From Epithemia pelagica (lineage: Eukaryota; Protista; Bacillariophyta), in contig OX337230.1 of NCBI GenBank assembly GCA_946965045.2, positions 3,286,001 through 3,350,000 on the forward strand: a stretch of DNA of 64,000 nucleotides. Direction: 5' to 3'. Position 1 is the first letter of the stretch; every line of letters begins with the position of its first letter. The position numbers and the translations under genes were made by a program. This document shows positions 1,322-50,335 of this stretch, piece by piece. Under the pieces are notes generated by a model. It did not search any database. It was not told the DNA's origin and saw nothing but the letters and a program-made list of their open reading frames with translations.

Positions 1322-4300
1322 ATGGAAGCGACACCTCCCAAGACACCGTTTACTCCTCCTGAGGACAAGTCAAGTCATATAACCAACCAAGATCTCTTCG
1401 ACCATATAACTAAAGGCATCTTTGGTTGTAATGATGAACGAGCCCAATCACTTCAAAAGTGGGTGCGACATCATGGTTTTGAACATATCCTTCATGTCCT
1501 CGACCATGTTGCAACTGATCCCGAGGAGACACTCAAGGATCTCATGCAATACAAGGTTGGAAAACAAGTCAACGACCTACAGACAAGTACAAGATTACAA
1601 CTCAAACTAATGGCATATTGGTTACTACAACAACGGCAACTCCAACATGGAAAACTACCCCGTGCTACATGGATGAACCTCACGAGGGACCAATATGACG
1701 ATTGGAGGATCAACACCGACTTTACCAAGTCTGGTATGAACCAAGACCCAGTTTCTCCTCTGAAATCACCTGTACACTCCGTATCATCCCGATCTCCCAC
1801 TACATCCTCTACAACATCTCAATCCATGTTAGATCTCTCTGCTTTCAAGAAAGGAACCAAAAGAGATGCAACAACATTTGAATCATTCAAAGACGAACGA
1901 TACTTTGATTCGTTTTGGCGTGTATTCAAATCAACTGCGAAAGCACAAGGATTGTCGAATGTTCTTGATTTCGATTACAAGGTACCCAAGGATGACGAAT
2001 GCGCAGAGTTACTTTTCCAAGAACAACAAGTCTTTGTCTATTCTTTACTTGTACGTATTATTCAAACCGACCAAGGAAGAGCATATGTTCGAGAACATGA
2101 ACATGATGAAGATGCAAGAGCCGTATTGAAGAAACTCCATGTTCTACACACTGAATCTGATCTAGCTAAGCGAGAAGTGTTACGCCTAACAAGCTACATT
2201 TCGAATCTTCGACTGGATGACTCTTGGCGTGGTACAACTCGTCAGTTTCTCCTACATTTTCAAGAACAGCTACGACTTCTGGATAACCTTGTACCACTGT
2301 CGGATCGTATCCATGACCATACAAGGATGACCTTCCTTATGCAAGCTGTTAAAAAGGTACCTGATTTAAGACGAGTCAAGATCTTGGATAACGTTGTCAA
2401 CACAAAATCTGGAGCCAAGTCTCTCTGTTATCAATCATATTTCCGCCTGCTTCTTGATGCTGCTTTTGACCATGACCAAGCTACCCGAACTTCTGCGTCT
2501 AACCGCCGTCGTCATGTAAAGCAACATGAATTTCAGTTGGATGAACCTTTTGAACCAGTGGAGCCCCCTGACTACCAGATCAACAACACGAATATCCAAT
2601 CCGAAAAGTCCCCAACTTCGTCGAAAATCAGCCTTCCAAGAGATGTATGGTTTAAACTCTCTGAAGAGGATCGGCAAATCATTGTCGACTTCAATAAATC
2701 CGTCCAAGATTCCCCGACAACTCAACGCAAGGTCCAAACACATTCTCTTGACATTGATCCTGAACCGGACCCTGATCCTGATGCCAACAACATTGGTGAT
2801 ACCCATCAAGATGCACCAGAACAAGATCCATTCGATACATCCTCTGATCCGGTTACCCAGTTCGTACACCAGGCTATTGCATCGACAGATATCAATCATC
2901 CAGCATCTGACCTCAGCAACATCTTGTCAACTTCTACGACAAAGTCAAGTCCTAAAGTCAAGTTCAAGTCTTCTGCCGATCACAAGCAAAAGGTTCATAT
3001 GTCACGATATCTATTCTCCCGCAAATCCACCTTTTCTGGTAATCAACTCATCGATCGAGGTGCCAATGGAGGCCTTGCAGGATCTGACATGCGTATCCTT
3101 GCCAAAACCGGACGTCATATTACCATCGTAGGTATTGACAATCATGAATTGACTGGCCTTCCAGTTGTTACCTGTGCTGCCAAGTTTGATACAAGTGATG
3201 GACCCATTATTGGTATCTTCAATGAGTATGCCCACTATGGAAAGGGTTTATCTATCCATGCCCCAGCGCAATTTGAACATTTCGGCTTATCTGTCGACGA
3301 ACGATCCGTCAAGGTTGATGGCAAACAACGCATTACTACCCTTGATGGACGTGCATTGCCCTTACGAATCAAAGATGGCCTTGCATGCATTCAATCTCTG
3401 GGAATCCCTTCTGATGACGATATGGATAAATATCCGCATATTGTGTTCACTTCACCCCATATCTGGGATCCTTCTGTACTTGACCATACCCATCCAGACC
3501 CCCATCAAGACCCTGCACCGAACTGGACATCTGTGGAGACTGATGGTAGTATGGAAACGTACCCCTATGACCAATATGGGGAGTATACGGATCGCGTTGT
3601 ATGCACTTTGAATCTCCTCCTTGATCTCCCATATGATCATGGCCCCGATACACCTTCCTTCTTTTCCATCTATGCTGATCAAGATGGCAACGACCCCACA
3701 CTTCATGCGTCTGTCCACAAACTCTACAAGGAACAATACGACTGGAAGAAATTTCGCCCTTTCTTTGGGTGGCAATCGGAAGACGTAATCGCCGATACGT
3801 TCAAGCATACAACTCGTCATGGACACATTTCCTTTGACCAGGATACCTTGAAGAAACACTTTAAGGCCCGGAATCCTATCCTTAACCTACCACGACGGCA
3901 TGAACCCGTTGCCACTGACTCCATCTTCTCCGACACCCCGGCTGTTAACCATGGTGGCAAGATTGCTCAGATTTTTGTTGGTCGTGATACTTTGGTTACT
4001 GACATTTATGGTATCAAGTCTACCAAGCAATTCGTCAATACCCTCCAGGATAACATTCGTACACGTGGTGTCATGGAGACTTTGATCAGTGATGGTGGTT
4101 CGTCACTTATTTCCCACAAGGTCAAGGATATTCTTCGCACCCTTCTGATTGGTGAATACCGTTCCGAGCCCTATCATCAACACCAGAACAAAGCTGAGAA
4201 CCGCTACCAGACCGTTAAGCGTATGACCAATGCTATCATGAATGCCTCTGGTTGCCCTGCTTCTGCATGGTTACTTTGTTTAGAATATGTGTGTGACCTC

Positions 4301-32891: not shown

Positions 32892-34171
32892 CAAGACTCA
32901 GACGATGCCCCAGTCACGAGACGCAAGACCCGCAAAGCTGAGTCACGTTTGAACATCAATGCTGGGATTTTAGACGATGACTCATTCTCTGTTCTGTAGT
33001 GACCATGACCATGAGGATGAACTGGGGAAGACTCTGATTCAACTCTTGATGATCACTCTTCTCTGGCTGTTCGCGCATGCTTAGTTTGCAAATCAGCTCC
33101 ATCAACTCAGCCTGAGATTCAGACGGGTGAACATCAACGACACAACCCGACTGATTCATCAACAGCATACCTCAAACCCATTTCAATCCAGAATGTGATC
33201 ATAAAAACAAAAACAGTCAAACTGTAAAGCAGTAGACACACCTTTTTGTCCCTAACAAGATCACCATGACCTTCTACACCACTTCCGCTCTTCTTCTTTT
33301 GCTCGCTGTGACACCATCCACCATGGCTTTCTCTCCCTTTTTCGGCAAAGCCAACAACAACAACAAGGTCGCCACCAACACGGATTTGTCTTCATCCGCA
33401 GCTGGTAACGACAATCGTCCCATTTACGATCCCTTCAATCTCTATGGTCCGAACTCACAAGAACGCAAGACTGGCCGCATCCAACCACTCGAAGACAATG
33501 ACAGCACACAGCAAAGGCCAGTTCTCGATCCACTCAACTTGTATGCAGACAAGAGTCAAGTTTCGGAAAACGTCGACATGTCCGCGTCTCTGCCCTTTGT
33601 TCCTCGTCCATCACATTTGACGGGAGAACTACCAGGTGATGTGGGCTTTGATCCCCTCGGTTTGGCATCCTCTGGGGCAGACTCACTCGACTTTCAACGA
33701 CGGGCCGAACTCAAGCATGGTCGATTGGCAATGTTGGCTGCAGTGGGATGGCCTCTGTCGGAACTTTTTCAACAAGCTTGGAGCAGTACAACGAATGGAG
33801 GACAACAACCACATTTGGAACCGTCATTGCTCAATGTGGGTGACCGTGTTCCCTCTGTGTTGAATGGTGGTTTGGATAAGGTATCACCACTGTTTTGGGT
33901 GGGTGCCTTGGCATTTGGGAGTGTTATTGAAGTGTTTGCGAACTATTACAAACGCCAAGGAGAAGAAGATGCCTTGTTGTTTGATCCATTGGGACTTTAC
34001 CCGTCGAACAATGACCAGGGTCAGCAAGAGTTTGTCAAGACATCTGAAACGTTTCATGGACGTTTGGCTATGTTAGCGATTGTGGGTTATGCAATGCAAG
34101 AGTTTGCGACTCAAGTTGGAGTAGTGAATGAAACTCCGTTCTTTTTCCATCCAGCCTTTTGGTCTTCCTAA
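32892..34171 (+). repeat. ~1.3-kb direct duplication, copy 2
   Basis: Colinear with 27756-29047. Confidence 0.9.
33266..34171 (+). CDS. Fucoxanthin-chlorophyll a/c binding light-harvesting protein, intact copy (301 aa)
   Basis: Signal peptide with TMA-FSP (ASAFAP-like), GDVGFDPLG, ELKHGRLAMLA, SETFHGRLAMLA. Subfamily not assigned with confidence. Confidence 0.93.
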   Translation: MTFYTTSALLLLLAVTPSTMAFSPFFGKANNNNKVATNTDLSSSAAGNDNRPIYDPFNLYGPNSQERKTGRIQPLEDNDSTQQRPVLDPLNLYADKSQVSENVDMSASLPFVPRPSHLTGELPGDVGFDPLGLASSGADSLDFQRRAELKHGRLAMLAAVGWPLSELFQQAWSSTTNGGQQPHLEPSLLNVGDRVPSVLNGGLDKVSPLFWVGALAFGSVIEVFANYYKRQGEEDALLFDPLGLYPSNNDQGQQEFVKTSETFHGRLAMLAIVGYAMQEFATQVGVVNETPFFFHPAFWSS

Positions 34172-34225: not shown

Positions 34226-34353
34226 TGGTGCGTCCATGGCTAGTGTTTTACATCCCAAAAGACAAGGATGAAGAAGAAGAAGAACACAGTGGTGCGTCCA
34301 TGGCCAGTGTTTTACATCCCAAAAGACAAGGATGAAGAAGAAGAAGAACGCAG
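34226..34353. repeat. 64-bp tandem duplication next to a poly-C run
   Basis: TGGTGCGTCCATGGC...GAAGAAGAAGAAC at 34226 and 34290. Confidence 0.9.
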
Positions 34354-34640
34354 CATCTGTTTACTGTCTCAGCTATTTTTATGGCCACGCTGACGGATCT
34401 TCATCGAAAACTTTCTACAGTAAAGATGGCGAATTGAATCATCAGACGCAAGTGCCTTATTGATAGAATGATTTTGTAATAAATACCCTTATGATGAAAC
34501 TTTTCGCTGTGAGGATTGGAGAGAAAGAAAAGTACCATTGAGGTAGTACTACTAGGAGTACCTTGGAAGCTGAAGGAGGCCCTGGCGCCAACTTCGACTA
34601 TGAGGGAAACACACATAGATGACATAGAAAATTGGCTTTA

Positions 34641-34671
34641 CAAGCTGAGTCACGTTGCGGAGTGCATGAGT
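34641..34671 (+). repeat. Left TIR, CAAGCTGAGTCACGTTGCGGAGTGCATGAGT
   Basis: Reverse complement of 49801-49831 with 4 mismatches; preceded by TA. Confidence 0.88.
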
Positions 34672-35016
34672 TTTTCAAAGTGGGAAATTGTATACTACAC
34701 TTTAGCCCACAGTACCCCAGCGTTTCGGATCACTTACGGTTTTTGCTGCCTCACATTTTGTCACGCACATAATGAAAAATGCAAAATGCAATAACGACTA
34801 GTGACCGCTTCATGTGACAATGGCCAATCCCCGGGCCGAACGAGCAGCACCACCCAACCTAATCGATAGGATAGATATAAAAGTAGTAGGAAATCATAGG
34901 GGTGTCGCTCGTTCGCACCTACGACTCAGTCTCCAGGGGCAGTGAAAGTTTACTTGCAAACATCGTGGGCAACACACCTCATCCTCCATCTCCTTACCTT
35001 TGCCCGAACAAACACA

Positions 35017-38000
35017 ATGGTCGAATCAAATAGAGGGCTATACATGATCGTATGTAAGGAATTTAGCATCAGATGCCATCCAATGCGCTTCCTCTGGACA
35101 AACAGGTGGATTGTTGATGCTGAGTTTGTCACCTACTTAAAGCAGTGGGTTCCTGAGTTGTCCAATGCAAATATGATGAATCGCTCGTTAATGCACAAAG
35201 GAAGTGAATGGCGACTCCATTTGCTATCACAAGAATGGAATCCAAGGGGTGTGTACCGTCATGAGGTGCGACGTCGAGGTGGGAAAAAAATATTCTACTA
35301 TGTTTCGGCTCGTCAGACCGATCCACCACCTCAATTCAACCACACTATTGAGGAGTGGCTTAACTTCATAAGCCACAATCAGATTCAAATTGGAGGGAGG
35401 AACAAACGCAAGAAACCCACAACACCAATCAAGGATGATGAAACTGCCACAACGGCAGCGTCATCACCACCAAGCCCAGAGCAGATTTTGGAAGAGGCAC
35501 TGGAAACCACCACAACAACAACAACCACAGGCACAGGAAACGACAATGGAAACAACAACAACAACGAGCATTCCAATGCCTCCAGTGACTCTTCTGCCGT
35601 AGATTTCTTCGACCGGCCCGTTGTGAGCAAAATCTTTGGTCCGAGAGTGAATGGGGAGACAACGAGAAAGAAGCTGGAACGGTGGATTGAGTCACTTGAA
35701 ATGGCGGAACAGCGGTTTGATTGTTTTTTGACTCTTTTCAACAAGGGCCAAGATGAGCCACCGCCAAACTCTTGTGTCCCAAAGATGCTTATGAGGATGC
35801 GGGTGCTGAGGCTTGCGTATGAGCGAGCCCTGCACACCATGGAGGATGGTGCCACGTGGACTTCGTGTTGCAAATATGCAACCGAACGGAGTAGAATCTC
35901 AAAAAGCGGTCTGCAGAATTGGCGGACTGTGCAAAGAGCCAACGTTGCATTCCGGGTCAGCGGCATGTTCCCATATCCAAACTGGTACATCCAGATTGGG
36001 AAGAAGCCGTGCCCATGCTTTCTGGCTCAATATCCAGAAGCACTCCCATTGCTGCAGAAGTGGGCGAGCCAACATCTGGAGACCCTCTCTTGCGAGATGG
36101 CAGCCATGTACATTCGAGACAGTTTGATCCCATTGATATATAAAAAAGAGCAACAGGCGGACACCGAAGATGGGGAGCCATCCACAGAGCCGCTCACGTT
36201 GGACGAGTTCCGTCAAAAAGTGAAGCTCCCCAGTGTTTCAGTCGGTGCGGCATGGAAGATTCTCACATATGCTGGGTTTCGATTCTCTGAAACAAAGAAG
36301 ACATACTACACGGACTGTCACGAGGACGCCGTCAATGTTCAAGCCCGGAAGCAGTTCATCTCGAAATACTTCGAGTTGGAAAAGCTTGCGCATCGATGGA
36401 TTCAGATTCCATCCGACCAAGCAATCAAACTTGAAAACGGGGAGATTGAGGGTGTCTCCGAAAAGCTCATGAAGGATGTTTGGGCTTTCGAGTTTCGAGA
36501 CCCTTCGACGAACCAAACAATGCGAGAATACCATGTAGATTGTTTTCCTGATGTGTTTTCATCATACATTAGAGATGAAAACAAGCTGCTGGGAGGAAAT
36601 TTGTCGCATCGTTTCCCTTCTGAGCGTCGTCCTGTTGTGCTTGTTGGCCAAGATGAAGCCATTTTCAAGCAATGGTCCTTCTCGAAGAAGAGTTGGGGGG
36701 ACCACAAAGGGCGTGGAGTTCTTTTGCCCAAAGACGACGGGCACGGTTTAATGCTTAGTGCATTCGTGAGCCGCGCATGGGGGTTCTATTCAGACAACTC
36801 AGGCGAAGTTGTCCTGCTCACCCCCGAGAAGCTTGAGGCAATCAATCAATCTCGTCGAGCGCAGACGTACTTGGCCGAGGACTCTGCCAGTCAAGTACTT
36901 GGTGGCAGCAGCAAGCGGATCCGGCAGATCACGGATGCCAGTGCGTTCTGCACGTATTTTGACTATGGATCCAACAATGATGGCTAGTGGAACTACAATC
37001 ACATGGCCCTCCAATTTGAGGACTTGGTTGATTGTTTGATGGTCCTCTATCCATCCTTTGATTTTGCTTTTCTCTTTGACAACAGTAGCGGTCATGGACG
37101 AAAACAGAAGGATGGGCTCAACGAGAAGACCATGAACAAGGATTGGGGTGGAGTGGTACCCAAAATGCATGAGACAATTGTTGAGTGCATCGGTCCATAT
37201 CCACACCCTCATTGTCTTCAGCCAGGGTCAAAGCAATCCATGGTATACACGGATGCGGACCCTGGCCCATTTGCTTATAAGGGTGTTCCTCTCACTGAGG
37301 AGCAACGACAACGAATGAAGTTCGACCACCCAACCAATCAAACAAAGAAACACAAGCTGTCCAAGAAAGAATTGATTGGTGAGCTCATTCGCCATGACAT
37401 TCAACAAGGAGCTCAACATGGCGACAGGGCACTTCAAGCCTACCATTCCAAATCCCTTGACCAGCTCCAGGCAATTTCGACAGCAAGGCAGCTACCAACC
37501 GAGGTAGACCGAGTTGTCATGGAGCAGGGCTGGCTCGGGCAACCAAAGGGTCTCTTCCAAGTTCTGGGCGAGCGTGGTTTCATTGACACCACCAAGCTCC
37601 AGGAATACCGCAAGGACATGAGTAAGACATGGTTGGATGGTTCAGGACAGGTCCGTAAGGACAAGATGGAGGAATACAAGAAGTATTCCTTGACTTACCT
37701 GATGGGATCGTGCGAGGACTTCAAGAATGAGAGATCAGCCCTCGAACAACTGGCGGCTGATCTCTCGCAGCGATATTCTCGCAACCTTGAAATCCTCGTC
37801 ACACCAAAATACCACTGCAAACTGGCGGGTGAAGGGATCGAGTACGCATGGGGTCTTGGGAAGCGATACTTCCGACGCTTGACAAGAAACAAGAAAGGCA
37901 ACAAGACGAAGTTCATGCAAGTGGTGAGAGACAGTATGGGGAAAGTTTCGCTGAGAACCGTTCGCAGGTTCTCAGCGAAAGCAAGGCGGTACATGCTTAC

Positions 38001-38166
38001 CTATTTGTTGTTTGACAGCAGGAATCAATGTGCAACAGATGACATCCTGTTTGTCGAAATCGAGAAGTATGTGAATGTGAGCATGAAGACTCACCGGTGC
38101 ACGCTCGATCAAGAGCACTCGTTCATCCAGCAAGTCTGGAAGGAGGCACAAGAAGCAGAACGCTGA
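35017..38166 (+). pseudogene. ~1050-codon DDE transposase interrupted by an in-frame TAG (36985-36987)
   Basis: GQDEAIF (D1), FLFDNSSGH (D2, 37078), PKYHCKLAGEGIEYAWG (E, 37840). The two ORFs are in one frame joined across ...NDG*WNYNH. Confidence 0.85.
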
Positions 38167-38435
38167 AATTCATATTGTAACACATTTACGTACCATAGAA
38201 CTCCTCTTCATCTTCATACTTGTAGGCTTGTCATGCACGAGACTCTGTTTCACTTTTTCCAGAAGCAAATTTTATGAGAGAATCTTTTTTGTACCTCTCA
38301 AGCGCTGCGAAGTTCATTGGTGACACCAAAAATAGACTGGTCCACAGTGTACAAACGACAGTCTGATGACTGTCAATGCGGTTTTCACTCTCATTCGGAA
38401 GCTCAAAGGGGTTGGCGTTTCTGCGCCTTCTCCAA

Positions 38436-38504
38436 AAAGTGCAGCAGTCCAAGTTCATAAAAGTGCAGCAGTCAGAATTTTTCGACAGCGACAAAGTGCA
38501 GCAG
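38436..38504 (+). promoter_or_regulatory. Three copies of AAAGTGCAGCAG just upstream of the SET gene start
   Basis: Copies at 38436, 38460 and 38493; ATG at 38517. A regulatory role is inferred only from position. Confidence 0.45.
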
Positions 38505-38516
38505 CCTGCAACAGCC

Positions 38517-39601
38517 ATGGGAAAGCGACAGACACGTTCCGCTACAAAGCAACAGGCGAGTTCCGCAAGAACACGAACAAGAGCAGCAAAGCCGCCTCGT
38601 CGCATGCAGCAAAATCGAAAATACAAAATGGATGAGCTCAATCAGAAACAACGAGCGAGGAAGAAGATTGCAACAACAAGAACGCCACGGGCAGTGAAGG
38701 CGGAGAATCTCATGGCCAAGCTTGAAGGCCTGTATGGATCAGGTACTTTGGAGGAAAGAACCGAATTATATCGGTTCATTTCCTCCCACATCAAGGGCAT
38801 CGTGAGCATCGAAGGTGCACAGGTCCGGAAAGCCCACGGCTCCAAGGGCAAACCTGTTGGCACAGCAATCAAACACTATGCTCCAAGTAAATACAACAAT
38901 AAGAAAGGGTCGGGAATCAACAAGAAACACAAGAACAATCTACTTGTCAAAGGGACAATGATGGTGGACCTAAACGATAATTCACAAAAGTACGAGTGCA
39001 TTGTTCAGTACGTCGACGAAGACTTGTTTGTCATCAAGCGATCAACCTTGGACAACGCTCGTCTCGGGCTTTTTGCAGCAAAGCCCTACAAAAAAGATGA
39101 AATGCTGGGATTCTATGGTGGTAAGGTCCTTGACAAGTCTCGTCCGCCTTCTGCTTACGCTGTCCGACTGCGTACAAGGCCTTCTGTCTTCGTTGATCCA
39201 TCCGCGGCAGACCTTTGGATGGGTTTGCACTTTGCAAACGATCCAAACTATGCCAAGTATCACGACAACCAACCTGTTGACCCGGACGACAAATGCTACA
39301 ACGTCCAGGTCGATGGAAAGCTCAAGGCTACAGCCAAACGCAACATTAAAAAAATCAAGAGTTGTTCTGGTGCTACAATCTGGCGTCGGGCATGAGGACT
39401 GGCAGCCAGGATGAGCAAGATGAATCTTCAGATGGCAACGACGACGAGGAATCCGAGAAGTTGGATGATGAAGGAGATGAAGATGAGGATTCAGATTCGG
39501 ATTCGGATGACGAGGAAGATGACGAAGGCAACAACAACGAGAAAGATCAGGATTCGCACGACGAAGACGAAGATGACGATGAAGAAGAAGAAAGCGACTA
39601 A
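38517..39601 (+). CDS. Transposon-borne SET-domain protein with basic N-terminus and D/E-rich tail; 1-bp frameshift in an A-run (~39348-39354)
   Basis: STLDNARLGLFAAKPYKKDEMLGFYGG, HFANDPN and ATAKRNIKK; a frame change restores QELFWCY and a ~60-aa acidic tail. Confidence 0.75.
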
Positions 39602-39665
39602 GGCCACGATGATGAAAGTAAAGGACAACAATTATTCAGTATTTAGAATGGTTTATTTTACGTAA

Positions 39666-40603
39666 CTAATACTTGTAGTAGTCCTCCTGACTAAACATAT
39701 TTTCCTCCTGCGTATCTTCAAATCCATCATCAACGTGAGAGTCATACGTGGCGTCATCATCCGACGTCGTTGAAGGAGCCTCACGAAAGAGACTCGGGCT
39801 TGCACAACTGTCAGCCATGAAATGCACAGCCCTCTCGGCCTCACGTCTCTTTTGGGCGTGCTTCTCACCAGGCGTCAAGTACTGCCAATCCACCACATTG
39901 GATTTCATGACAGTCTCCGCCTCACCAATGGACTCCTCCTTCTTCAATGGAGTGCGAGTCTCCATCAGCATTCCATCCTCTTGTCCTGAAAACAAAATGA
40001 GGTGAGTACTACGATCGTTCCAATCAATTACAAAGGCACAATCAACTTACCATTTTTGTTGATTGTTTCATTGTTTCTGGGCTTGTGGCTACGCTCAGAC
40101 TGCTTAAGCGTTTCCACAATCTCGGCAATCGAGACTTTGCCCGAATGATGATGGTGGTTTCGACCAAGCACCAGGGTCGTGGCTCCATTCTCATCACCAA
40201 GGATGAGATGCCACTGTGTTGCTTTGTTCAATGCATCCTTGAGCCTCTGCGCCTTGTCGTCGATGGCCACCGGCATCAATACCACTATGTCCTCGTTTGC
40301 TCCTCTTGGAGTCTCCCCTTCAACCACCTTGGAAATGACGAAATCTGGAGACTGGGGTGGGGGGAGCTCCGGACTCGTCTTCTTTGTTCGACGCTTCTTG
40401 TTTGCGTTCTTCTTCGTGGAGCTCTTCTTCGGAGGGAGCTTCTTGCCCGGTGTCTTCGCTGGTGTCTTCGCTGGTGTCTTCCCTGGCGTCTTCCCTGGCG
40501 TCTTCCCTGGTGGAGGAACAGTATCTTCCTGGATGTCATCCAGGAAACTTGGTGTTTTGGTGCGGGTGCGACTTGGGTAGCGACGATGGCTGTTGTTGCT
40601 CAT
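39666..40603 (-). CDS. Transposon-borne basic protein with TP-x-K repeats and acidic C-terminus; one intron (39986-40050)
   Basis: ATG 40603 MSNNSHRRY...GKTPGKTPGKTPAKTPAKTPGKK. The phase-1 GTAAG...TTTTCAG 65-nt intron joins in frame to GQEDGMLME...EDYYKY*. Confidence 0.75.
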
Positions 40604-40829
40604 CTTGTTTTGTTTTTTGTGAGACGAACACACAACTGAGAGCATCGTGCTGTGTCTTGTAATGGGATGTGGAATGTACCTGCTAGCGATCTCAAGACCA
40701 AACTCAAACAACCTACTTAGATCAACGGATAGCTGAACGGAAAGAGGTGCGCGTAAAGATCCGACCAACCCGTGTGGCTCCCACATTTTGGATGCATCCG
40801 GAAACGAAACATGCAAACACGAAACAACC

Positions 40830-41584
40830 TAGTAGAATTCCGTCAGTACACGCTCTAGAAGAGCCACAATCGATTACCAACTGATACCAAGGTTCTCCAC
40901 GGGTCAGAGAACAAAGGAAACCCAAGGGTTCTATCGTAGGGATAGTCAGGACACTGAAGACGTGATGATATGGTAATGTTAATGATTGTGAGCTTACTAC
41001 TAGGTTTGGTGTGTGAGATTTCCATTCTTGTTGTCGATCGTGTGAAATAGGTTCTTGGCGGTGATAGGTCTGGAATGGTTGGAGTTGATGTATGTGAGGT
41101 ATATAACATGTATATGTGCTTGTATATCATATACAGCCTCAACGATTCTTGGCTAAAGTTGGTATATGTAGTTTTGTTGGCGCGTCCTTGTTTGCAATCT
41201 TGAAATAGTGGGAACGATGATATGGTCTCGCGTGATCGTGATTCGTGCCTTGTGTACTTAGACCGTTGGGTCGGATACATGATCGCCACGCTCGGATAGT
41301 TCTTGCGCGCATCTTGACGAATTTGGGCGCGCACGCTTAGGGCATAGGTCAGGCTCGGATGATCATCCGTTGATGGGATATCAAGACCAAAGTTGATTCT
41401 TGATAGCACGTTCGTCAATCTGTTCTCACTTTTTGGTATATGCGACCGAAATATAGGTTGAGCTAGCGCGAAGCTAGGTATGTAGTGTGGATGTAGGTGA
41501 TGTAGGTGATGTTTGAAGCCACGGGACTCGACTAACCGATGAGGTGCCGAACCTAACCGATGATTTTCGGTGAGAGTTCTACTA
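40830..41584 (-). repeat. 3' LTR of E2 (TAGTAGAA...TTCTACTA)
   Basis: Direct repeat of 48281-49035; PPT (CTCCCC on plus) at 41585-41590. Confidence 0.97.
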
Positions 41585-44500
41585 CTCCCCACAGCTCTTT
41601 GGTTCAGCCTTGTCATCGCTGGATTCGTAGAGATCTTGAACTTCTCCTCTCCAAAACAATAGGGGCTTGAGTAGAGGCCAAATAGTTGCAAATTCCCAAT
41701 GCTTGCTGAGGATGTCGGCAGGGTTGGTCTTCCCATCCTTCCAATAGAATGCAACGTATTGCGCTGCTATCGCTTCTCGTACCCGGTGATATGAAAGGAG
41801 ATGATGTCTCTTGGACAAGATAGAATGAGGCATTGTTGCGTTAACAACCACAGATCGATTGTCTCCAAACAGATAACTGCGATCCCTGATTGGTACTCCA
41901 AGGTAACAAAGTGAATGCCGTAATTCAGTGATTTGGTCGACTGCTGTCCTTGCTGCCACAAATTCTGATCCATATGTTGCCGTTTCCACAGTGCTCTGTC
42001 GTTTGCTGTACCAATCAATTGGTGTCCCATTCAAGAGATGCAGGATGGCTGTTACAGACTTTCCTGTGATCATGTCGTGCATAAGGTTAGCATCAACATA
42101 GTGCGTTGTCGTCACATATCGTCCAAGTGGTTCTGGGCAATCATGAGGGATGTATTCCTTGGCATCTGAATAGACCGTACGACTCCAATCAAAGTCTTGA
42201 CTTGGAATGCTTGAGAAATCGGGCTCTCTGATTCGGAATCTGATTGCACCATCAGAAAGATTGAAAAGGTATCCATAGATGCGTTTAGCTCTGTTGAGAT
42301 GTCCCTGTCTTGGAGCTGCGCGGAACCTGGAAAGGGTCATCGTAGCAGTAAAAACATCAAAGCGACCAATTGTAATCACCCACTGAAGCTGTCCAATCAA
42401 GGTCTGGAAGTGCTGTGTACCTTCTTCATCAAGGAGTTTGGTGTCGTCCAATTCCGGGTGATCACCAGCAATGAGAGGGGTTTTAGCCTTCTTGGGTTTC
42501 TCTTTGAAGATACGTTCGAAGGTGTCCATCATTTTGCTAATGTATCGACGTGGATCAGAGACTAGGGTTCCGTCAGGGTCTTTGGTGTACCGGCATCCCA
42601 GGTGATAGTCAATAGGTCCATCTCCCTTAAGCTTGAAGTTGTACTTTTCCTTGAAGACTTTGCAAATGTTTCCAGGGTCAGTAGCTATGATGGCTAAGTC
42701 ATCCACATATACGGCGATGTATTCGTAGCAATCCTCCCCAGGTGCTTTTCTCATCCAAATGTCAGGATCTGCCTTGCTTGGTGAGAAACCCATATCGGTG
42801 AGGACGTCAAAAAGGACATCATGCCATCGTGCGCCTGAAGATTTGAGACCATAGAGGGCCTTGTAGATGATGAGGATGTGACCTTCTAGCTCCTTGAACT
42901 CGGGTCCTGCCACAATATATAACTTCTCCCCAGTCAATGCTTCAAGATACGCATTCCCAATGTCTGCTCCCCATACTTCTAGATCGTTCAGAGATCCAAG
43001 GAATAAAGCAATTCGTAGGTTGCGAATAGAAACAACTCCAGAGTAGATCGTTTCCACAGGTTCCTTCGTCAAGTGTCCATCTGCAACAAGTCGTGCCTTG
43101 TGCCTACCATCATGTTTCACATCAAAAACGAGATGCACTCGAATCTTTTGATATCCCTCAGGTGCATTTGATACCTTGCCATTTGTGAAGATGGCCTTCC
43201 CATGGTCCTTGAATGTCTCATATGATTGTATCTGAGACAGTTCCAATTCAGTTGCGTCTTGCCACCTTGTGGTACCATTTTGTTTGTCAAGATTGACAGC
43301 CTCGGCGTAATCTCGAGGGACTTGGAATCCAAACTTATACTTGACTGATCGACGTACTTGTTTGATCCTTGATTGTTTTGCAGCACGTATCAGGCGTTTA
43401 CTCGTCTTGACGTAGCGTTTCAGGTGTTTCCATCCTGGTTCGTTGAGGAGCCCATGCTTCTTTCCATATATGGCAACGGTGATTGGGTCGTCGTTGGCAA
43501 TAAGGGAGAGTGGTTCATAGGTTGTCTCCCCAGTTTCCCAATCCACAAGCAAGTTATACTTACTCCCCTTATAATCCGGGTCGGTTGAAGACAGTGGGCC
43601 TTGATGTGCAATAACATCCCTGAAACGGAACAAATTATCTCCCGAGGTCTGCGCTTGATTGTCCCTCTCAATATACTCCATTATTTGGTTATAAGAGATC
43701 ATTTCATCAACGTCAGAATTTGTCTTGCGGTAGATGTACTTGATGCGTTCTTGTTGCTTGAGTGATTCTTCATTAAGATCTACAACTCGTTTGACAACGC
43801 GTGCTCGATGACGCTCCCCATTTTCTTCAGTGTCGCATAAGAAAGTGCGTCCTATCATGTCTTCATAATCGATTGTAGGCATTGGTTTGGATGGATCTTC
43901 ACTTTTACTGCGAATGAAGACAGTGTCAGCCTGCTTATCAGTGTCATCTTTCGGAGACGTCTCCCCTGAAGGTCGATCCACACGAAGGTTGGGTGTAGTG
44001 GAAGCGACACGGCGAACAGCGGAACGGTAGAGGATATGGTTGTCAGCAGACAAAATCTTCCATGTAAAAGCATCACCAACGTTGTGAGCAAAACCAACCC
44101 AATGGCCAAGTTTCTCATCGGTCGAAGAAGGGTAGGGACCAGACGACGGTTCGGAGGGGTCAACACGATAGTAGACTTCATCCCAGAAGGGAAAGAACAG
44201 GAGGTGCGAAATGTCGGGAGGGTGACCGGTGAGAGCCTCAATAGGAGTACGTCCAGAGTGTGCATGTGAAGAAGAATGATTCAATAAGTCACAGACATAT
44301 TCAAGGCAAAGTAACCAAACATTGGCCGGGCATCCAGTTGCATTCATGATAGCGTTCGCCATTCGTTTAACGGTCTGATAACGATTCTCGGCTTTGTTCT
44401 GATGCTGGTGGTATGGTTCAGAGCGATACTCCCCAATGAGCAAGGTGCGAAGGATATCCTTAACCTTATGGGAAATGAGAGATGAACCCCCATCACTAAT

Positions 44501-47248
44501 GAGTGTCTCCATAACACCTCGCATGCGTATATTGTCTTGAAGAGTGTTCACAAATTGCTTGGTAGACTTGATACCGTAAATATCAGTGACAAGAGTATCG
44601 CGGCCAACAAAAATTTGAGCCACCTTTCCACCATGATCAACAGCAGGTGTATCAGAAAAGATCGAATCGGTAGCAACGGGTTCATGACGACGTGGTAGAT
44701 TCAGGATAGGGTTGCGTGCCTTGAAATGTTTCTTGAGAGTGTCACAGTCAAAAATCACATTAGCATGTCGTGTAGTATGCTTGAAAGTATCGGCAATAAC
44801 TTCCTCGGATTGCCAACCAAAGAAGGGACGAAATTGTTTCCAATCATGTTCTTCCACATAACGACGATGGACAGATGCATGTTGAAGGGTTGGGTCTTCA
44901 CCATTAGCATCAGCATAGATAGAGAAATATGTGGTGTTGTCGGGTCCGTGGTCATAAGGAAGGTCAAGGAGAAGATTGAGATTGCAGACAACACGATCAG
45001 TGTACTCCCCATACGTGTCATATGGATAACGTGCCATACTGCCGTCGGTTGCAACCTGATGCCATGTAGTAGAAGCATCATGCTGTGGATCTGAATGAGT
45101 ATGGTCAAGAACAGAGGGGTCCCAAGTAGATGGCGAAGTAAAGATGATTTGCGGCAATCGGTCCATGTCATCATCAGAAGGGATACCTAATGAGTGGATA
45201 AAGGCAAGTCCATCCTTGATACACAGAGGTAAAGCACGTCCATCAAGGGTAGTGATACGTTGCTTTCCATCCCCCTTGACAGAACGTTCATCCACAGATA
45301 GCCCATAATGTTCCAATTGACAAGGCGCATGTATAGACTGTCCTTTTCCATAGTATGCATATTCGTTGAAGATACCAACGATTGGTCCATCATTAGTTTC
45401 AAACTTGGCAGCACAAGTGACAATGGGGAGACCAGTAAGTTCATGGTTGTCGATTCCCACAATCGTGATGTTACGACCTGTCTTGGAAAGGATACGCATA
45501 TCAGCTCCGGCTAAACCACCATTGGCACCACGATCAATGAGTTGATTCCCAGTATAAGTCGACTTTCGAGAGAACATATATTGAGTCATGTGGACCTTCT
45601 GCTTGTGCTCATTCTGTTTGAAACTAACTTTCTTACTCGTCTTAGATGCGGCATTGGATAGAACATTAGACAAATCAGAAGCTGGGTGATTGAGGTCGGT
45701 TGACGTCATTGCTTGATGGATGAGATGGGTGGCTGGATCGGAATCATCCTGCGGATATGTGGGGTTGTCCAGGTCATCGAAAACATCTTGACCAGGGTCA
45801 GGATCAGGTTCAGGATCAATGTCAAGGGAGTGTTGCTGTACTTTTCTTGGACTCGGAGTAGAAGCTTGCACGTTCTTGTTATACTCAACAATCATCTTGC
45901 GAGCATCCTCAGGAAGTTTAAACCATAGGTCACGAGGAAGACTGGCTTTTGGAGATGCCGTGTTATCATCTTGGACATTGGTATTGTTTATCTGATATGC
46001 ATCGTCTTCCTGAAGGGATCCCTCAATATCATGTTGTGTTTCGTGTTGCTCGTGTTGCTTGACACTACGACGACGACCAGTTGCAGAAGATTGCGTGACT
46101 TGATCATGGTCATATGCTGCGTCCATCAAAATGGAGAAGTACGACTGATAACATAAAGACTTTGCTCCAGACTTCGTGCTGACGACGTTGTCCAAGATTT
46201 TAACTCTGCGAAGGTCAGGTACCTTCTCGACAGCTTGCATAAGAAACGTCATCCTGGTGTGATCAGGTATGCGATCAGAGAGATCAACAAGGTTATCGAG
46301 TAAACGTAGTTTGTCTTGGAAATGAAGCAAAAATTGACGTGATGATCCACGCCATGTATCATCGAGGCGAAGGTTGGAGATGTAATTGGTTAATCGTAAG
46401 ACCTCTCGTTTCGCTAAGTCTGACTTCGTATGCAATGTGTGAAGCTTCTGTAACACTGCTCGTGCGTCTTCATCATGTTCATGTTCGCGAACATAAGCTC
46501 TTCCTTGATCAGTCTGGATGATGCGCACAAGGACAGAGTATAGGAATATTTGTTGCTCTTGGAAAAGTTCTGTTGCATACGTATCATTCGTCGGTGGCTT
46601 GTATCGGAAGTCAAGAACATTAGATAAACCTTGGGCTTTTGCTGTGGTCTTGAAAGTCCTCCAGAACGTGTCGTAGTATTGTTCATCCTTGAATGTTTCA
46701 TATGCCATAGCGTCACGCTTGGTTCCCTTCTTGAATGCGGTTAGGTCCAGTTGGGACTGTGATGCAGCAGAAGTAGTACTAAACGATTTGGGTGACGTCG
46801 AATGGGATGGAGATTTCATAGGTGATACTGGGTCATTGATAGGGCTTCCGGAGCGAAAGTCAGTGTTTATCCTCCATAGATCAAATTCTGCCTTGGTCAG
46901 ATTCATCCAGGTTGCCTTGGAAGGTATACCCTGAATGTCGATACTCGTTTGTCGGAACCAATGGGCAAGCAACTTGATCTGCTGGCTTGTATTGACATGT
47001 AGGTCGTGCATTTGTTTTCCTGACTTGTATTTTGTCATACTATCCATGTTCTTCTCAGGGTCAATTGCCATATGTTCAATGATACTAAGGATATCATCAA
47101 AAGCATGATGGTGCATCCATTTCACGAGTACATCGACCCTTTCCTTGGAAAAGTTGAACAACACCTGAGTCATATGATCAAAGACTTCTTGATCAGATAT
47201 ACTTTGATTGGTGTTGAACTCTGGTGTAGTCGGTGTAGTTGGTTCCAT
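41582..47248 (-). CDS. E2 gag-pol polyprotein, 1888 aa
   Basis: Colinear with E1 gag-pol with all catalytic motifs; its stop codon is the first TAG of the 3' LTR. Confidence 0.97.
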   Translation of the reverse strand: MEPTTPTTPEFNTNQSISDQEVFDHMTQVLFNFSKERVDVLVKWMHHHAFDDILSIIEHMAIDPEKNMDSMTKYKSGKQMHDLHVNTSQQIKLLAHWFRQTSIDIQGIPSKATWMNLTKAEFDLWRINTDFRSGSPINDPVSPMKSPSHSTSPKSFSTTSAASQSQLDLTAFKKGTKRDAMAYETFKDEQYYDTFWRTFKTTAKAQGLSNVLDFRYKPPTNDTYATELFQEQQIFLYSVLVRIIQTDQGRAYVREHEHDEDARAVLQKLHTLHTKSDLAKREVLRLTNYISNLRLDDTWRGSSRQFLLHFQDKLRLLDNLVDLSDRIPDHTRMTFLMQAVEKVPDLRRVKILDNVVSTKSGAKSLCYQSYFSILMDAAYDHDQVTQSSATGRRRSVKQHEQHETQHDIEGSLQEDDAYQINNTNVQDDNTASPKASLPRDLWFKLPEDARKMIVEYNKNVQASTPSPRKVQQHSLDIDPEPDPDPGQDVFDDLDNPTYPQDDSDPATHLIHQAMTSTDLNHPASDLSNVLSNAASKTSKKVSFKQNEHKQKVHMTQYMFSRKSTYTGNQLIDRGANGGLAGADMRILSKTGRNITIVGIDNHELTGLPIVTCAAKFETNDGPIVGIFNEYAYYGKGQSIHAPCQLEHYGLSVDERSVKGDGKQRITTLDGRALPLCIKDGLAFIHSLGIPSDDDMDRLPQIIFTSPSTWDPSVLDHTHSDPQHDASTTWHQVATDGSMARYPYDTYGEYTDRVVCNLNLLLDLPYDHGPDNTTYFSIYADANGEDPTLQHASVHRRYVEEHDWKQFRPFFGWQSEEVIADTFKHTTRHANVIFDCDTLKKHFKARNPILNLPRRHEPVATDSIFSDTPAVDHGGKVAQIFVGRDTLVTDIYGIKSTKQFVNTLQDNIRMRGVMETLISDGGSSLISHKVKDILRTLLIGEYRSEPYHQHQNKAENRYQTVKRMANAIMNATGCPANVWLLCLEYVCDLLNHSSSHAHSGRTPIEALTGHPPDISHLLFFPFWDEVYYRVDPSEPSSGPYPSSTDEKLGHWVGFAHNVGDAFTWKILSADNHILYRSAVRRVASTTPNLRVDRPSGETSPKDDTDKQADTVFIRSKSEDPSKPMPTIDYEDMIGRTFLCDTEENGERHRARVVKRVVDLNEESLKQQERIKYIYRKTNSDVDEMISYNQIMEYIERDNQAQTSGDNLFRFRDVIAHQGPLSSTDPDYKGSKYNLLVDWETGETTYEPLSLIANDDPITVAIYGKKHGLLNEPGWKHLKRYVKTSKRLIRAAKQSRIKQVRRSVKYKFGFQVPRDYAEAVNLDKQNGTTRWQDATELELSQIQSYETFKDHGKAIFTNGKVSNAPEGYQKIRVHLVFDVKHDGRHKARLVADGHLTKEPVETIYSGVVSIRNLRIALFLGSLNDLEVWGADIGNAYLEALTGEKLYIVAGPEFKELEGHILIIYKALYGLKSSGARWHDVLFDVLTDMGFSPSKADPDIWMRKAPGEDCYEYIAVYVDDLAIIATDPGNICKVFKEKYNFKLKGDGPIDYHLGCRYTKDPDGTLVSDPRRYISKMMDTFERIFKEKPKKAKTPLIAGDHPELDDTKLLDEEGTQHFQTLIGQLQWVITIGRFDVFTATMTLSRFRAAPRQGHLNRAKRIYGYLFNLSDGAIRFRIREPDFSSIPSQDFDWSRTVYSDAKEYIPHDCPEPLGRYVTTTHYVDANLMHDMITGKSVTAILHLLNGTPIDWYSKRQSTVETATYGSEFVAARTAVDQITELRHSLCYLGVPIRDRSYLFGDNRSVVVNATMPHSILSKRHHLLSYHRVREAIAAQYVAFYWKDGKTNPADILSKHWEFATIWPLLKPLLFWRGEVQDLYESSDDKAEPKSCGE

Positions 47249-47326
47249 GATTGCTTGACTTGGTGATAAGATATGTTGATATGTGTCCTGTGATGTCTTA
47301 GTCGAAAACTTTAGTTAAAACTTGTA

Positions 47327-47412
47327 ACCCGGATGTGTGGTGTGCCTTGTGAACCCGGATGTGCCACGTATGTCCACGTGTGATGTGATGTCCGAAAGGT
47401 AACCCGGATGTG
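47327..47412 (-). repeat. Three copies of CACATCCGGGT in the ORF0-gag spacer of E2
   Basis: ACCCGGATGTG on plus at 47327, 47353 and 47402. Confidence 0.85.
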
Positions 47413-47461
47413 CGGAACTCGGTTTTGTCTCTGGTTTGGTGTGAAAACTACTTAAAATTAC

Positions 47462-48241
47462 TTACACGTGGTCACTTCTGGGCTCGTTGTGGTAATCAAG
47501 TTGAATCGGAGACTCAGTAACAGAGGTAGCTTCTTCGTTGCCGTTGTGGTCCTCAACTAGGTGGTTCACTGGTTGGGTGAGTAGAGGGAAGATAGTGGCA
47601 CGGAAGTCCTGGTGCAACTTGATAACGTGGATGAAACCAACGTAGTCGTCGAGACGGGTAGTCAAGGTAGGAAGAGGTTGGTTAGTCTTGTTCACGACCC
47701 AAATGGTATGGAAGTAATTGACCGGACGCTGGAAAGTAAGGAAGCGTACCCGAAGGCAGCCTGATGGGGTGGTCGATAGGGTCGTCGCTATGTATCGGTA
47801 GCTTGGAGATTGGTATAGCAAGTCTAGGAGTCGTTGGATATCCTCTAGGTCGACGACGGGTTGGACGGACTCGAACGAGACCTCGTGTTCGAGCGTCGAA
47901 CGGATGTGGTCCGGGTCGCTCTGATACTCGGATGGCTCGCGGAAGTAACGGAGGTGCGCGTTGATGAGACGGCTCGTACGTCGGGTGCGAGTTGGGTTCG
48001 GGCGAGGAGGTGTACTCGGTCGGCGTGCAAGGGTGTTCGGCGGGCGATTTGGGTCGGACGGCGGAGGGACGACTTGATCGGGAGTCTGGAACGGATTAGG
48101 CGCGCTAGCCTTCTCCGGGGAGTTAGAGGGCGTCTCGATGAGGAATTCGCCAGGGTGGACGGCAATCTGCTGTGTTGGGTCACCACTCTGCTGGAAAGCG
48201 TTGTAGATCCGACGGATAGGAGTATTGGAGTCACTGGACAT
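47462..48241 (-). CDS. E2 ORF0 (259 aa), homolog of E1 ORF0
   Basis: ATG about 40 nt downstream of the LTR; aligns end to end with E1 ORF0. Confidence 0.88.
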   Translation of the reverse strand: MSSDSNTPIRRIYNAFQQSGDPTQQIAVHPGEFLIETPSNSPEKASAPNPFQTPDQVVPPPSDPNRPPNTLARRPSTPPRPNPTRTRRTSRLINAHLRYFREPSEYQSDPDHIRSTLEHEVSFESVQPVVDLEDIQRLLDLLYQSPSYRYIATTLSTTPSGCLRVRFLTFQRPVNYFHTIWVVNKTNQPLPTLTTRLDDYVGFIHVIKLHQDFRATIFPLLTQPVNHLVEDHNGNEEATSVTESPIQLDYHNEPRSDHV

Positions 48242-48266
48242 GAAAACTTTGGGGAAATGAGACAGT

Positions 48267-48280
48267 TGAGACTGTTAATC
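48267..48280 (-). promoter_or_regulatory. Primer-binding site of E2, GATTAACAGTCTCA
   Basis: Directly abuts the 5' LTR end at 48281. Confidence 0.85.
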
Positions 48281-49035
48281 TAGTAGAATTCCGTCAGTAC
48301 ACGCTCTAGAAGAGCCACAATCGATTACCAACTGATACCAAGGTTCTCCACGGGTCAGAGAACAAAGGAAACCCAAGGGTTCTATCGTAGGGATAGTCAG
48401 GACACTGAAGACGTGATGATATGGTAATGTTAATGATTGTGAGCTTACTACTAGGTTTGGTGTGTGAGATTTCCATTCTTGTTGTCGATCGTGTGAAATA
48501 GGTTCTTGGCGGTGATAGGTCTGGAATGGTTGGAGTTGATGTATGTGAGGTATATAACATGTATATGTGCTTGTATATCATATACAGCCTCAACGATTCT
48601 TGGCTAAAGTTGGTATATGTAGTTTTGTTGGCGCGTCCTTGTTTGCAATCTTGAAATAGTGGGAACGATGATATGGTCTCGCGTGATCGTGATTCGTGCC
48701 TTGTGTACTTAGACCGTTGGGTCGGATACATGATCGCCACGCTCGGATAGTTCTTGCGCGCATCTTGACGAATTTGGGCGCGCACGCTTAGGGCATAGGT
48801 CAGGCTCGGATGATCATCCGTTGATGGGATATCAAGACCAAAGTTGATTCTTGATAGCACGTTCGTCAATCTGTTCTCACTTTTTGGTATATGCGACCGA
48901 AATATAGGTTGAGCTAGCGCGAAGCTAGGTATGTAGTGTGGATGTAGGTGATGTAGGTGATGTTTGAAGCCACGGGACTCGACTAACCGATGAGGTGCCG
49001 AACCTAACCGATGATTTTCGGTGAGAGTTCTACTA
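48281..49035 (-). repeat. 5' LTR of E2
   Basis: 755 bp, same sequence as 40830-41584. Confidence 0.97.
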
Positions 49036-49093
49036 CAACCCACTGCTTTGAATCGATCGAACAATCAACCTAACGTGCGGAGTTTGGAGTACG

Positions 49094-49633
49094 ATGCTAC
49101 CAACACCAACAATCAACAACGGCATGGAGGACGAGGTCGAGTTCTTTTTCAACAAGGACAAGTTTGGCTCTGAAGACGATCGAAGTCGATGTAACTTTCG
49201 GACGAGCTTTTACGCGGACAGGGTCAATGTTCTCGTTGGAGACATTGTCGACAACGGCGCAGAACAAAATGGACGGAATGTTGTCGACCGTGGGTATGTT
49301 CTCCTCCAACGGGAGACAAGCACAGACTATCTTCGGTTGGCATTTTACAAGAGGGAAGCGCGGTCCGAGTTTGCCGACCCGCTGCTTGTGCTGCCAGTTG
49401 GGTTCATTGTCAAGACAGTGATGAAGGAAGTTCTCTCACCCACGGACTCCAGCAAGAAGAAGGGCCGCATTCAATTCTACACACGGTGCACGATCGATAC
49501 AAAGAGCAGCATGGACCCAATGGTCGTCACCCTCTACATGAGCCTCTTCCACATGGAAGAGCTCAAGACTGCTCTTGCCTACATGACGACAAAATACCCT
49601 ACCCAGAACCTGTTCTTTACAGCAGATGCGTAA
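49094..49633 (+). CDS. Transposon-borne hypothetical protein (179 aa)
   Basis: ATG-initiated globular-looking ORF inside the TIRs; no family recognised. Confidence 0.6.
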   Translation: MLPTPTINNGMEDEVEFFFNKDKFGSEDDRSRCNFRTSFYADRVNVLVGDIVDNGAEQNGRNVVDRGYVLLQRETSTDYLRLAFYKREARSEFADPLLVLPVGFIVKTVMKEVLSPTDSSKKKGRIQFYTRCTIDTKSSMDPMVVTLYMSLFHMEELKTALAYMTTKYPTQNLFFTADA

Positions 49634-49800
49634 TAGAACCTACTTAGTCGATTAGCAATAGTACTTGTTGTGTTTGTAGCCAGGAATGGCATCGTATTTG
49701 TCCAAACATCGATCCATCCCATTGTCATGGTTGCTGCGGATTATCCACTGTGGAGTTTTGTGTACTGGTTTTTTTCGGGTACAGTCTTGTACACTAATAT

Positions 49801-49831
49801 ACTCATGTACTCCGCAACGTGAACCAGCTCG
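49801..49831 (-). repeat. Right TIR (reverse complement CGAGCTGGTTCACGTTGCGGAGTACATGAGT)
   Basis: Followed by TA at 49832-49833. Confidence 0.88.
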
Positions 49832-50335
49832 TATGGTTAAGGCCCATCGTGTGTGGTCAGTGGTCGGGTCCGTCTCTCGTTTTGCTTGTTGATCAAATGT
49901 GGCAGTGTGGGTGCTCTATCGTTTGTATACACCCAGCTGCCTCGTCATTGGATAAAACCAGGGTATATATGGGTATAGGTATGATGATCGACCATATGGG
50001 CTGACAGAGAGGTGGATGGAGTGGCAATGGGCAACGAATCCGTTCCAGCGACCGAACGCTTCTACATCATGTGATTCGATACCAGCAGAACGATGGTCGT
50101 ACTTTCCGGATGACAGGTTCGAATCTCGAAGAATAACACAACAACACTGTTTCTGATCAACGTGGGTTTGATTCTCCTTACAGCAAATCGCGTCTTCTGG
50201 TTGGCTTCCAGCGGCCGGGTTCGGGCGTTTCGTTCGCGCTCCGCGCATGTGTTCGAACAAGCAACATGCGAGGTCTTGCGATAAGGATGGTTCTGTTTGG
50301 AATTCGCATGACTCGATTGGATCATTGAGTTGTTA

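Follow-up and report, generated by a model that had tools for sequence, protein, structure and literature searches.

Transposons of the IS630/Tc1/mariner superfamily are normally 1.3-2.5 kb long and carry one gene, and their transposases place 34-41 residues between the second catalytic aspartate and the glutamate. SET-domain genes travel with DNA transposons of other kinds, including HarbingerS and oomycete (Phytophthora) MuDR elements (Kojima and Jurka 2014, as cited in PMC12730594), Helitrons, and red-algal Plavaka, in which three accessory genes, PAG1-3, include a SET-containing one and a putative 2-oxoglutarate (2OG) oxygenase (bioRxiv 10.1101/2025.02.11.637652). In this study, we analyse an element in the diatom Epithemia pelagica that lies at positions 34641-49831 of a 64,000-nucleotide stretch of DNA, hereafter the window (assembly GCA_946965045.2, contig OX337230.1, positions 3,286,001 to 3,350,000 of the forward strand). 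It is very probably a decayed copy of an autonomous, recently mobile family of cut-and-paste transposons with three conserved extra genes that may act for the element.

Compared with the IS630/Tc1/mariner elements Mos1, Hsmar1/Metnase and Sleeping Beauty, the transposase here is about three times larger (1049 amino acids when intact), has around 254 residues, including an inserted domain, between the second Asp and the Glu, and is recognized by no Pfam family, while the element itself spans 7 kb and has four conserved genes rather than one. It resembles HarbingerS, oomycete MuDR and Plavaka, several of which likewise come from stramenopiles or algae, in being a DNA transposon with a SET accessory gene, and it resembles Plavaka further in having three accessory genes, one of them with SET. 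Those elements, however, use PIF/Harbinger, MULE and CMC/Plavaka transposases, whereas the enzyme here is Tc1/mariner-like, and the target-site duplication (TSD) differs too. The partners of the SET gene also differ, being here a protein with a PH-like fold (ORF179) and a basic protein with TPxK repeats, with no DNA methylase domain. HarbingerS is defined by a PIF/Harbinger transposase, a 3-bp TSD and a Myb-like partner; in the present element no 3-bp duplication fits the flanks, the TSD is TA and the transposase core is closest to Tc1/mariner.

Carriage of SET genes by DNA transposons is not a new idea. What is new is the vehicle together with the kit, namely a giant enzyme of Tc1/mariner-like type that has an inserted domain and escapes family profiles, and a conserved set of SET, PH-fold and basic proteins. 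The original prediction for this locus, made from the letters of the window, knew of no such unit described in diatoms. Our literature searches found no description of this giant four-gene Tc1/mariner-like lineage, but SET capture has already been published for other transposon superfamilies.

Copies, target sites and recent activity

The left end of the element (34639-34671) consists of a TA (34639-34640) followed by the 31-bp terminal inverted repeat (TIR) CAAGCTGAGTCACGTTGCGGAGTGCATGAGT (34641-34671, forward strand), and the right end (49801-49833) consists of its inverted complement (49801-49831, reverse strand) followed directly by a second TA (49832-49833). The two repeats match at 27 of 31 positions in the window copy, as the original prediction had it, and at 30 of 31 in intact copies. 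The terminal CAAGCTGG(T/C)T of the left repeat is kept both in a subfamily at 82% DNA identity and in one at approximately 55% amino acid identity. Subtracting a nested copia-type retrotransposon and one copy of its CAACC target duplication leaves 6980 bp, in agreement with the unit of about 7 kb that had been proposed. Also as proposed, the genes run in the order transposase (+), SET (+), TPxK (-) and ORF179 (+), in the window as in other copies, and the TPxK and ORF179 genes stand head-to-head, diverging around a common intergenic region.

Searching the 60.5-Mb assembly from which the window comes, we found further full-length copies of the element on nine contigs. The young family has 12 located copies including that in the window, so that at least 11 further full-length, four-gene copies occupy new TA sites (one of them on contig C2), which is what the original prediction would have us expect of a transposon. 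We extracted 11 copies, the window copy and 10 others. The latter measure 6943-6972 bp and are 99.5-99.9% identical among themselves, and all 11 are flanked by TA on both sides, each at its own site with unrelated flanks. Open frames are retained by the transposase in 10 of the 11, by the SET gene in 9 and by ORF179 in every one. The same search recovered the 82% subfamily as two full copies and one partial copy, together with several further subfamilies at about 68% DNA identity; one deep subfamily measures 8955 bp, has TA flanks and begins with the same CAAGCTGGTT.

More than 20 short related elements were also found. The 15 that were fetched are MITEs (miniature inverted-repeat transposable elements) of about 575 bp, with the same TIRs and TA flanks, made up of the first 374 bp of the element, all that precedes the start codon of the transposase, and its final 200 bp or so, all that follows ORF179. 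The corresponding non-coding ends of the window copy lie, inside the TIRs, at 34672-35016 (5' end, +) and 49634-49800 (3' end, +). The MITEs, which lack all the genes, have been mobilized in trans.

The TA is a true target-site duplication, as is shown by an empty allele and by a nested MITE. Contigs of three public DNA runs from the same organism (X1-X3) were compared with one intact copy, L008. In each run a contig matches the right flank of L008 from the last two bases of the element (position 8470), and upstream of this junction it continues as AAACTCGAAAATACAGTTTTTACCTGGACA, the exact left flank of L008. The left flank of L008 ends GACACG-TA and the element ends CTCG-TA; the empty contig reads CCTGGACACG-TA-CATCCAG. 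This site has an allele with a single TA and without the 7-kb element, and the L008 insertion is therefore heterozygous or polymorphic. Furthermore, at locus L050 (G000:C3:2918994-2920272) the right TIR of one MITE contains a second MITE, in the arrangement ACTCATGCAC-TA-MITE-TA-CGCAACGTGAGCCAGCTTG-TA. Excising the inner MITE and one TA in silico restores a normal TIR, and the inner insertion used the internal TA of that repeat. The TA duplication and the single-TA empty site that the original prediction looked for are both present. Near-identical copies, a polymorphic insertion and MITEs show that the family has been active recently.

Other features of the insertion sites were seen in passing. 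MITEs lie within about 150 bp of each other at locus L051 (G000:C2:3514258-3515675). Across the 11 copies and 15 MITEs, C is the commonest base before the left TA, and G or C frequently follows the right TA, a hint of a broader, partly palindromic preference in target choice (nCTAGn-like).

Four genes inherited as a unit

Searches with the intact proteins (tblastn and blastp) recover all four genes from diverged copies, with order and orientation unchanged. Relative to the young family, protein identities in the 82% subfamily are 89% for the transposase, 75-80% for SET, 55-59% for TPxK and 86% for ORF179; in the deeper subfamilies they fall to 52-57%, 34-43%, 35-48% and 57-60%, respectively. 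When the young family is compared with the 82% subfamily, Nei-Gojobori estimates of omega are 0.14 for the transposase (95% confidence interval (CI) 0.11-0.18), 0.25 for SET (0.18-0.34), 0.40 for TPxK (0.27-0.58) and 0.13 for ORF179 (0.07-0.22). With every 95% CI below 1, these sequence comparisons place all four genes under purifying selection. Given the shared order in diverged subfamilies and this selection, the extra genes are therefore functional parts of the element and not one-time passengers. The original description of a cargo-carrying TIR transposon is thereby upheld, the extra genes accompanying the transposase in every copy and in the diverged subfamilies.

The association extends to a 9.7-kb sister family in the same genome, whose transposase is about 42% and whose ORF179 is about 45% identical to those of the 7-kb family. 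It shares the order of the transposase (+), a SET-containing gene (+), a basic gene (-) and an ORF179/PH-like gene (+). Its SET domain, on the other hand, lies within a 986-amino acid frame, whereas the SET protein of the 7-kb family, the more compact of the two, has 361-408 amino acids and no 2OG oxygenase domain, and the 7-kb element is itself smaller by 2.7 kb. The genome as a whole contains at least 86 ORF179-like and at least 67 SET-like loci, often a few kilobases apart. These loci fall into identity tiers of 100%, 85%, 60%, 45% and 30-36%; in the 30-36% tier the ORF179-like gene lies upstream of SET, a different order, and the pair may thus ride on other element types.

The transposase gene occupies 35017-38166 (+) and would encode 1049 amino acids if intact. 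Its 83 relatives, of about 1000 amino acids and without annotation, come from Fragilaria crotonensis and environmental assemblies. Forty-four of these relatives share without exception D546, D688 (along with S690 and H693) and E942 (along with W945). These residues fall within the motifs GQDEsIF, FDxSSGH and PKxHxElAGEGIEYxWGxxK, which resemble stretched forms of the DE, DNxxxH and PxLNPIExxW(xxxK) signatures of Tc1/mariner. Some 230 residues of the stretch from the second Asp to the Glu belong to the inserted domain. In an exhaustive structure alignment of the AlphaFold2 model of residues 490-1049 (pLDDT 85.6, pTM 0.80), the predicted core fold is nearest to Metnase, Mos1 and Sleeping Beauty. 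Annotated neighbours in the ESM Atlas, whether retrieved by features or by structure, are all DDE_3/IS630/Tc1/mariner proteins, the nearest being a basidiomycete cluster with the same insertion.

Because no profile matched, assignment to a superfamily rests on the fold, the TA duplication and the language-model neighbours. Together with the short bounding TIRs, the TA duplication and the RNase-H-like core closest to Tc1/mariner are traits of IS630/Tc1/mariner, and the modelled structure supports a position in or next to this superfamily, probably as a very divergent branch. The placement made in the original prediction is accordingly sustained by the TA, the TIRs and the fold, but not by a family profile or by the spacing of the catalytic residues. 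Residues 1-490, where the N-terminal bipartite helix-turn-helix DNA-binding domain of the superfamily would be expected, gave no match in Pfam. Within the inserted domain, residues 724-792 or so have a non-significant profile similarity to the ETS winged-helix domain of PU.1 (E 0.09), which is a lead only.

The SET gene (38517-39601, +) encodes a lysine-methyltransferase-like protein whose head is basic; about 140 conserved residues then lead into the SET domain, and the tail is acidic, rich in Asp and Glu. Pfam matched none of the four genes when given the window's own open reading frames (ORFs), and the SET match appears only with intact copies. Against a cut-off of 22.4 bits, the SET model scores 25.7 with the intact L008, 33.7 with L026 of the 82% subfamily, 25.0 with L036 and 29.7 with L057, which bears out the domain as originally named; the L029 subfamily, at 20.5 bits, stays under the cut-off. 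A profile of six SET subfamily members matches the SET domain of Chaetomium EZH2 (E 5e-6). The GxG motif, as (A/R)(G/L)GxFA, is kept in all subfamilies, as is E(L/I)FxxYNL, which aligns with EELFFNY of EZH2. A homologue search with the whole protein returned two self-like matches only, the acidic tail swamping the search.

The TPxK gene (40028-40603, -) probably starts at Met72 of a 262-amino acid ORF (40028-40816). Its product is basic and proline-rich, with TP(G/A)K repeats followed by a conserved C-terminal domain of about 60 residues that matched no known family. The repeats are similar to S/TPxK motifs in the tails of histone H1. The intron originally drawn in this gene is not supported by the DNA, in which the frame is open throughout, needs no intron and bears no sign of one.

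ORF179 (49094-49633, +), an open frame, is better conserved than the other two accessory genes, and 28 relatives were counted at the 50% cluster level. It matches no Pfam family. A fold search with its predicted structure, a seven-stranded antiparallel beta-sandwich with a C-terminal capping helix, identifies a PH-like fold of the group that includes the EVH1, RanBD, Dcp1 and TFIIH p62 PH kinds, with no assignable subfamily; as modelled, this is a peptide-binding adaptor fold. An ESM Atlas lead towards PDF2_C/START was not borne out by the fold search. A distant ORF179 homologue is found head-to-head with a basic gene rich in Lys, Pro and Ala on two short environmental contigs (L054:3-362 and L055:2-208). 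Complex prediction for TPxK (residues 72-258) with ORF179 gave no answer (score 0.00) and counts neither way.

Decay of the window copy

The window copy is dead and unable to move by itself, because a nonsense codon interrupts its transposase, its SET gene is frameshifted and a copia insertion splits the promoter region of the divergent gene pair. A change of TGG to TAG at 36985-36987 cuts the transposase into ORFs of 681 and 387 amino acids. The giant transposase of the original prediction is thus a property of intact copies, and in the window it is a pseudogene. In the SET gene one A has been lost from a run of eight (approximately 39349-39355), and the resulting frameshift near 39349 deletes the C-terminal SET motif.

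A direct repeat at a spacing of 7451 bp inside the unit marks a copia-type long terminal repeat (LTR) retrotransposon (40830-49035, -), which is foreign to the unit and sits in the intergenic region from which the TPxK and ORF179 genes diverge. The two LTRs of the retrotransposon, each of 755 bp, are 100% identical, its target duplication is CAACC (40825-40829 and 49036-49040), and its polyprotein of 1888 amino acids matches Pfam RVT_2 (E 5e-25). The insertion is very recent. The LTRs run from TAGTAG to CTACTA, in place of TG...CA.

Beyond its first kilobase the window copy is about 99% identical to the young family, whereas its first 750 bp (the 34641-35400 region) are only 80-93% identical both to the young family and to L026 of the 82% subfamily. 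The young family's own first kilobase (L008:1501-2500) is, by windowed identities, 96-99.6% identical to the subfamily from which it otherwise differs at 82% identity, and a second such stretch, at element positions 2500-3000 or thereabouts, is 94-98% identical between the two. This mosaic pattern points to recombination or gene conversion among subfamilies of the transposon.

Upstream of the insertion, a gene for a fucoxanthin-type chlorophyll a/b-binding protein (33266-34171; Pfam Chloroa_b-bind, E 2e-41) ends about 470 bp before the element, and a 64-bp tandem duplication (97% identical; 34226-34353) lies between the two.

Proposed role of the accessory genes

From the known mechanism of its family, the transposase would bind the 31-bp TIRs, excise the element and integrate it at a TA, which is duplicated in the process. 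The SET, TPxK and ORF179 proteins would serve the element rather than the host. They may most plausibly act on chromatin at or around the copies, or on the transposition complex, and the gain to the element could be favoured expression, integration or escape from silencing. We prefer the chromatin reading because of the SET domain, the H1-like basic protein and the acidic tail.

In its fullest form, the chromatin reading describes a portable three-part kit (SET as the writer, the PH-fold protein as an adaptor and a basic protein like an H1 tail), common to several element families in the genome, that would rewrite histone methylation to evade silencing or steer integration and that rides on an unrecognized giant branch of Tc1/mariner. 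By analogy with other systems this is a tentative proposal, and we think it rather unlikely to hold in every part. It would be like VANC of VANDAL (MULE) elements, and like the TET/JBP genes of fungal KDZ and other transposons, in that a transposon gene could act on host epigenetic marks at its own copies. Neither VANC nor TET/JBP, however, is related in sequence or fold to the accessory proteins described here; both act on DNA methylation, whereas the targets of a SET protein would be lysines, in histones or in other proteins.

Several results weigh against the view of the locus set out above. The models of the four genes are predicted from DNA only. The INH residues of EZH2 align with A/L-(K/L)-Y of the SET protein, in which Y295 is invariant (HMMER; the alignment of this loop is uncertain), and the canonical Asn-His pair thus appears to be replaced by (K/L)-Tyr, which makes catalytic competence uncertain. 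The transposase matched no Pfam family, including DDE_3, DDE_1 and Transposase_1, at E values up to 10, a profile of its alignment matched no solved Tc1/mariner enzyme among the PDB sequences, and 254 residues separate D688 from E942. Finally, transposase relatives outside the organism's own assemblies, in Fragilaria crotonensis (L035) and on environmental contigs (L060 and L061), have no recognizable SET, TPxK or ORF179 neighbours.

It is possible, if on the whole unlikely, that the three extra genes encode obligatory transposition cofactors in place of chromatin or anti-silencing factors, with the TPxK and PH-fold proteins recruiting or importing the transposase and binding the ends, and the SET protein methylating the transposase or a partner. 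In PIF/Harbinger elements a Myb-like ORF1 protein plays such a cofactor role. The persistence of the three genes beside the transposase across deep divergence, under purifying selection, would suit this explanation, as would the head-to-head pairing of PH-like and basic genes even on the two distant environmental contigs and the peptide-binding adaptor function of PH-like domains of the EVH1, RanBD and p62 kinds. The relatives that lack such neighbours in other organisms, however, suggest that the enzyme lineage probably works alone; mobilization of the gene-less MITEs also speaks against cofactors, although it needs only their supply in trans. The failures of the profile searches could be taken to mean that the transposase belongs to a different or new DDE superfamily that shares with Tc1/mariner only the TA duplication and a generic RNase-H fold. 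The long Asp-to-Glu spacing with its large inserted domain and the protein's threefold size point the same way, and a Foldseek search of the core against PDB (best E 0.027) did not discriminate, returning RAG1 (TM 0.1) and Mos1 (probability 0.57) alike at E >0.01. We nevertheless regard a separate superfamily as quite improbable in view of the uniform annotation of the ESM Atlas neighbours, the likeness of the three catalytic motifs to superfamily signatures and the TA duplication. A chance composite, in which SET, TPxK and ORF179 are ordinary host genes flanked on each side by a solo end or a MITE, could have been entertained from the window alone, where the single copy is disrupted and adjoins the chlorophyll a/b-binding gene. 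The copy survey refutes it and leaves it practically no chance, as eleven further copies of identical structure stand at unrelated sites, the gene order is kept at 82% DNA and about 55% amino acid identity, and an empty allele lacks the whole 7-kb unit. The copies and the empty allele likewise contradict the outcome that would have told against the original prediction, that of single-copy host genes with no linked copy and no empty site.

As parts of a mobile element, the four genes bear on how transposons are understood and annotated. Tc1/mariner is the textbook minimal transposon, and the lineage described here keeps an enzyme of three times the usual size and three accessory genes over long divergence. 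Since Pfam-based annotation does not see such elements, they probably pass for host genes in the annotation of diatom genomes; the relatives of the transposase in Fragilaria crotonensis carry the label 'hypothetical proteins'. The family is active now, which opens to experiment the question of what a transposon needs a SET protein for, with genetic tools at hand in related species. If it is true that the kit acts on histone marks, it would be a histone-level addition to the few transposon-encoded counter-silencing systems, a counterpart of VANC or TET/JBP.

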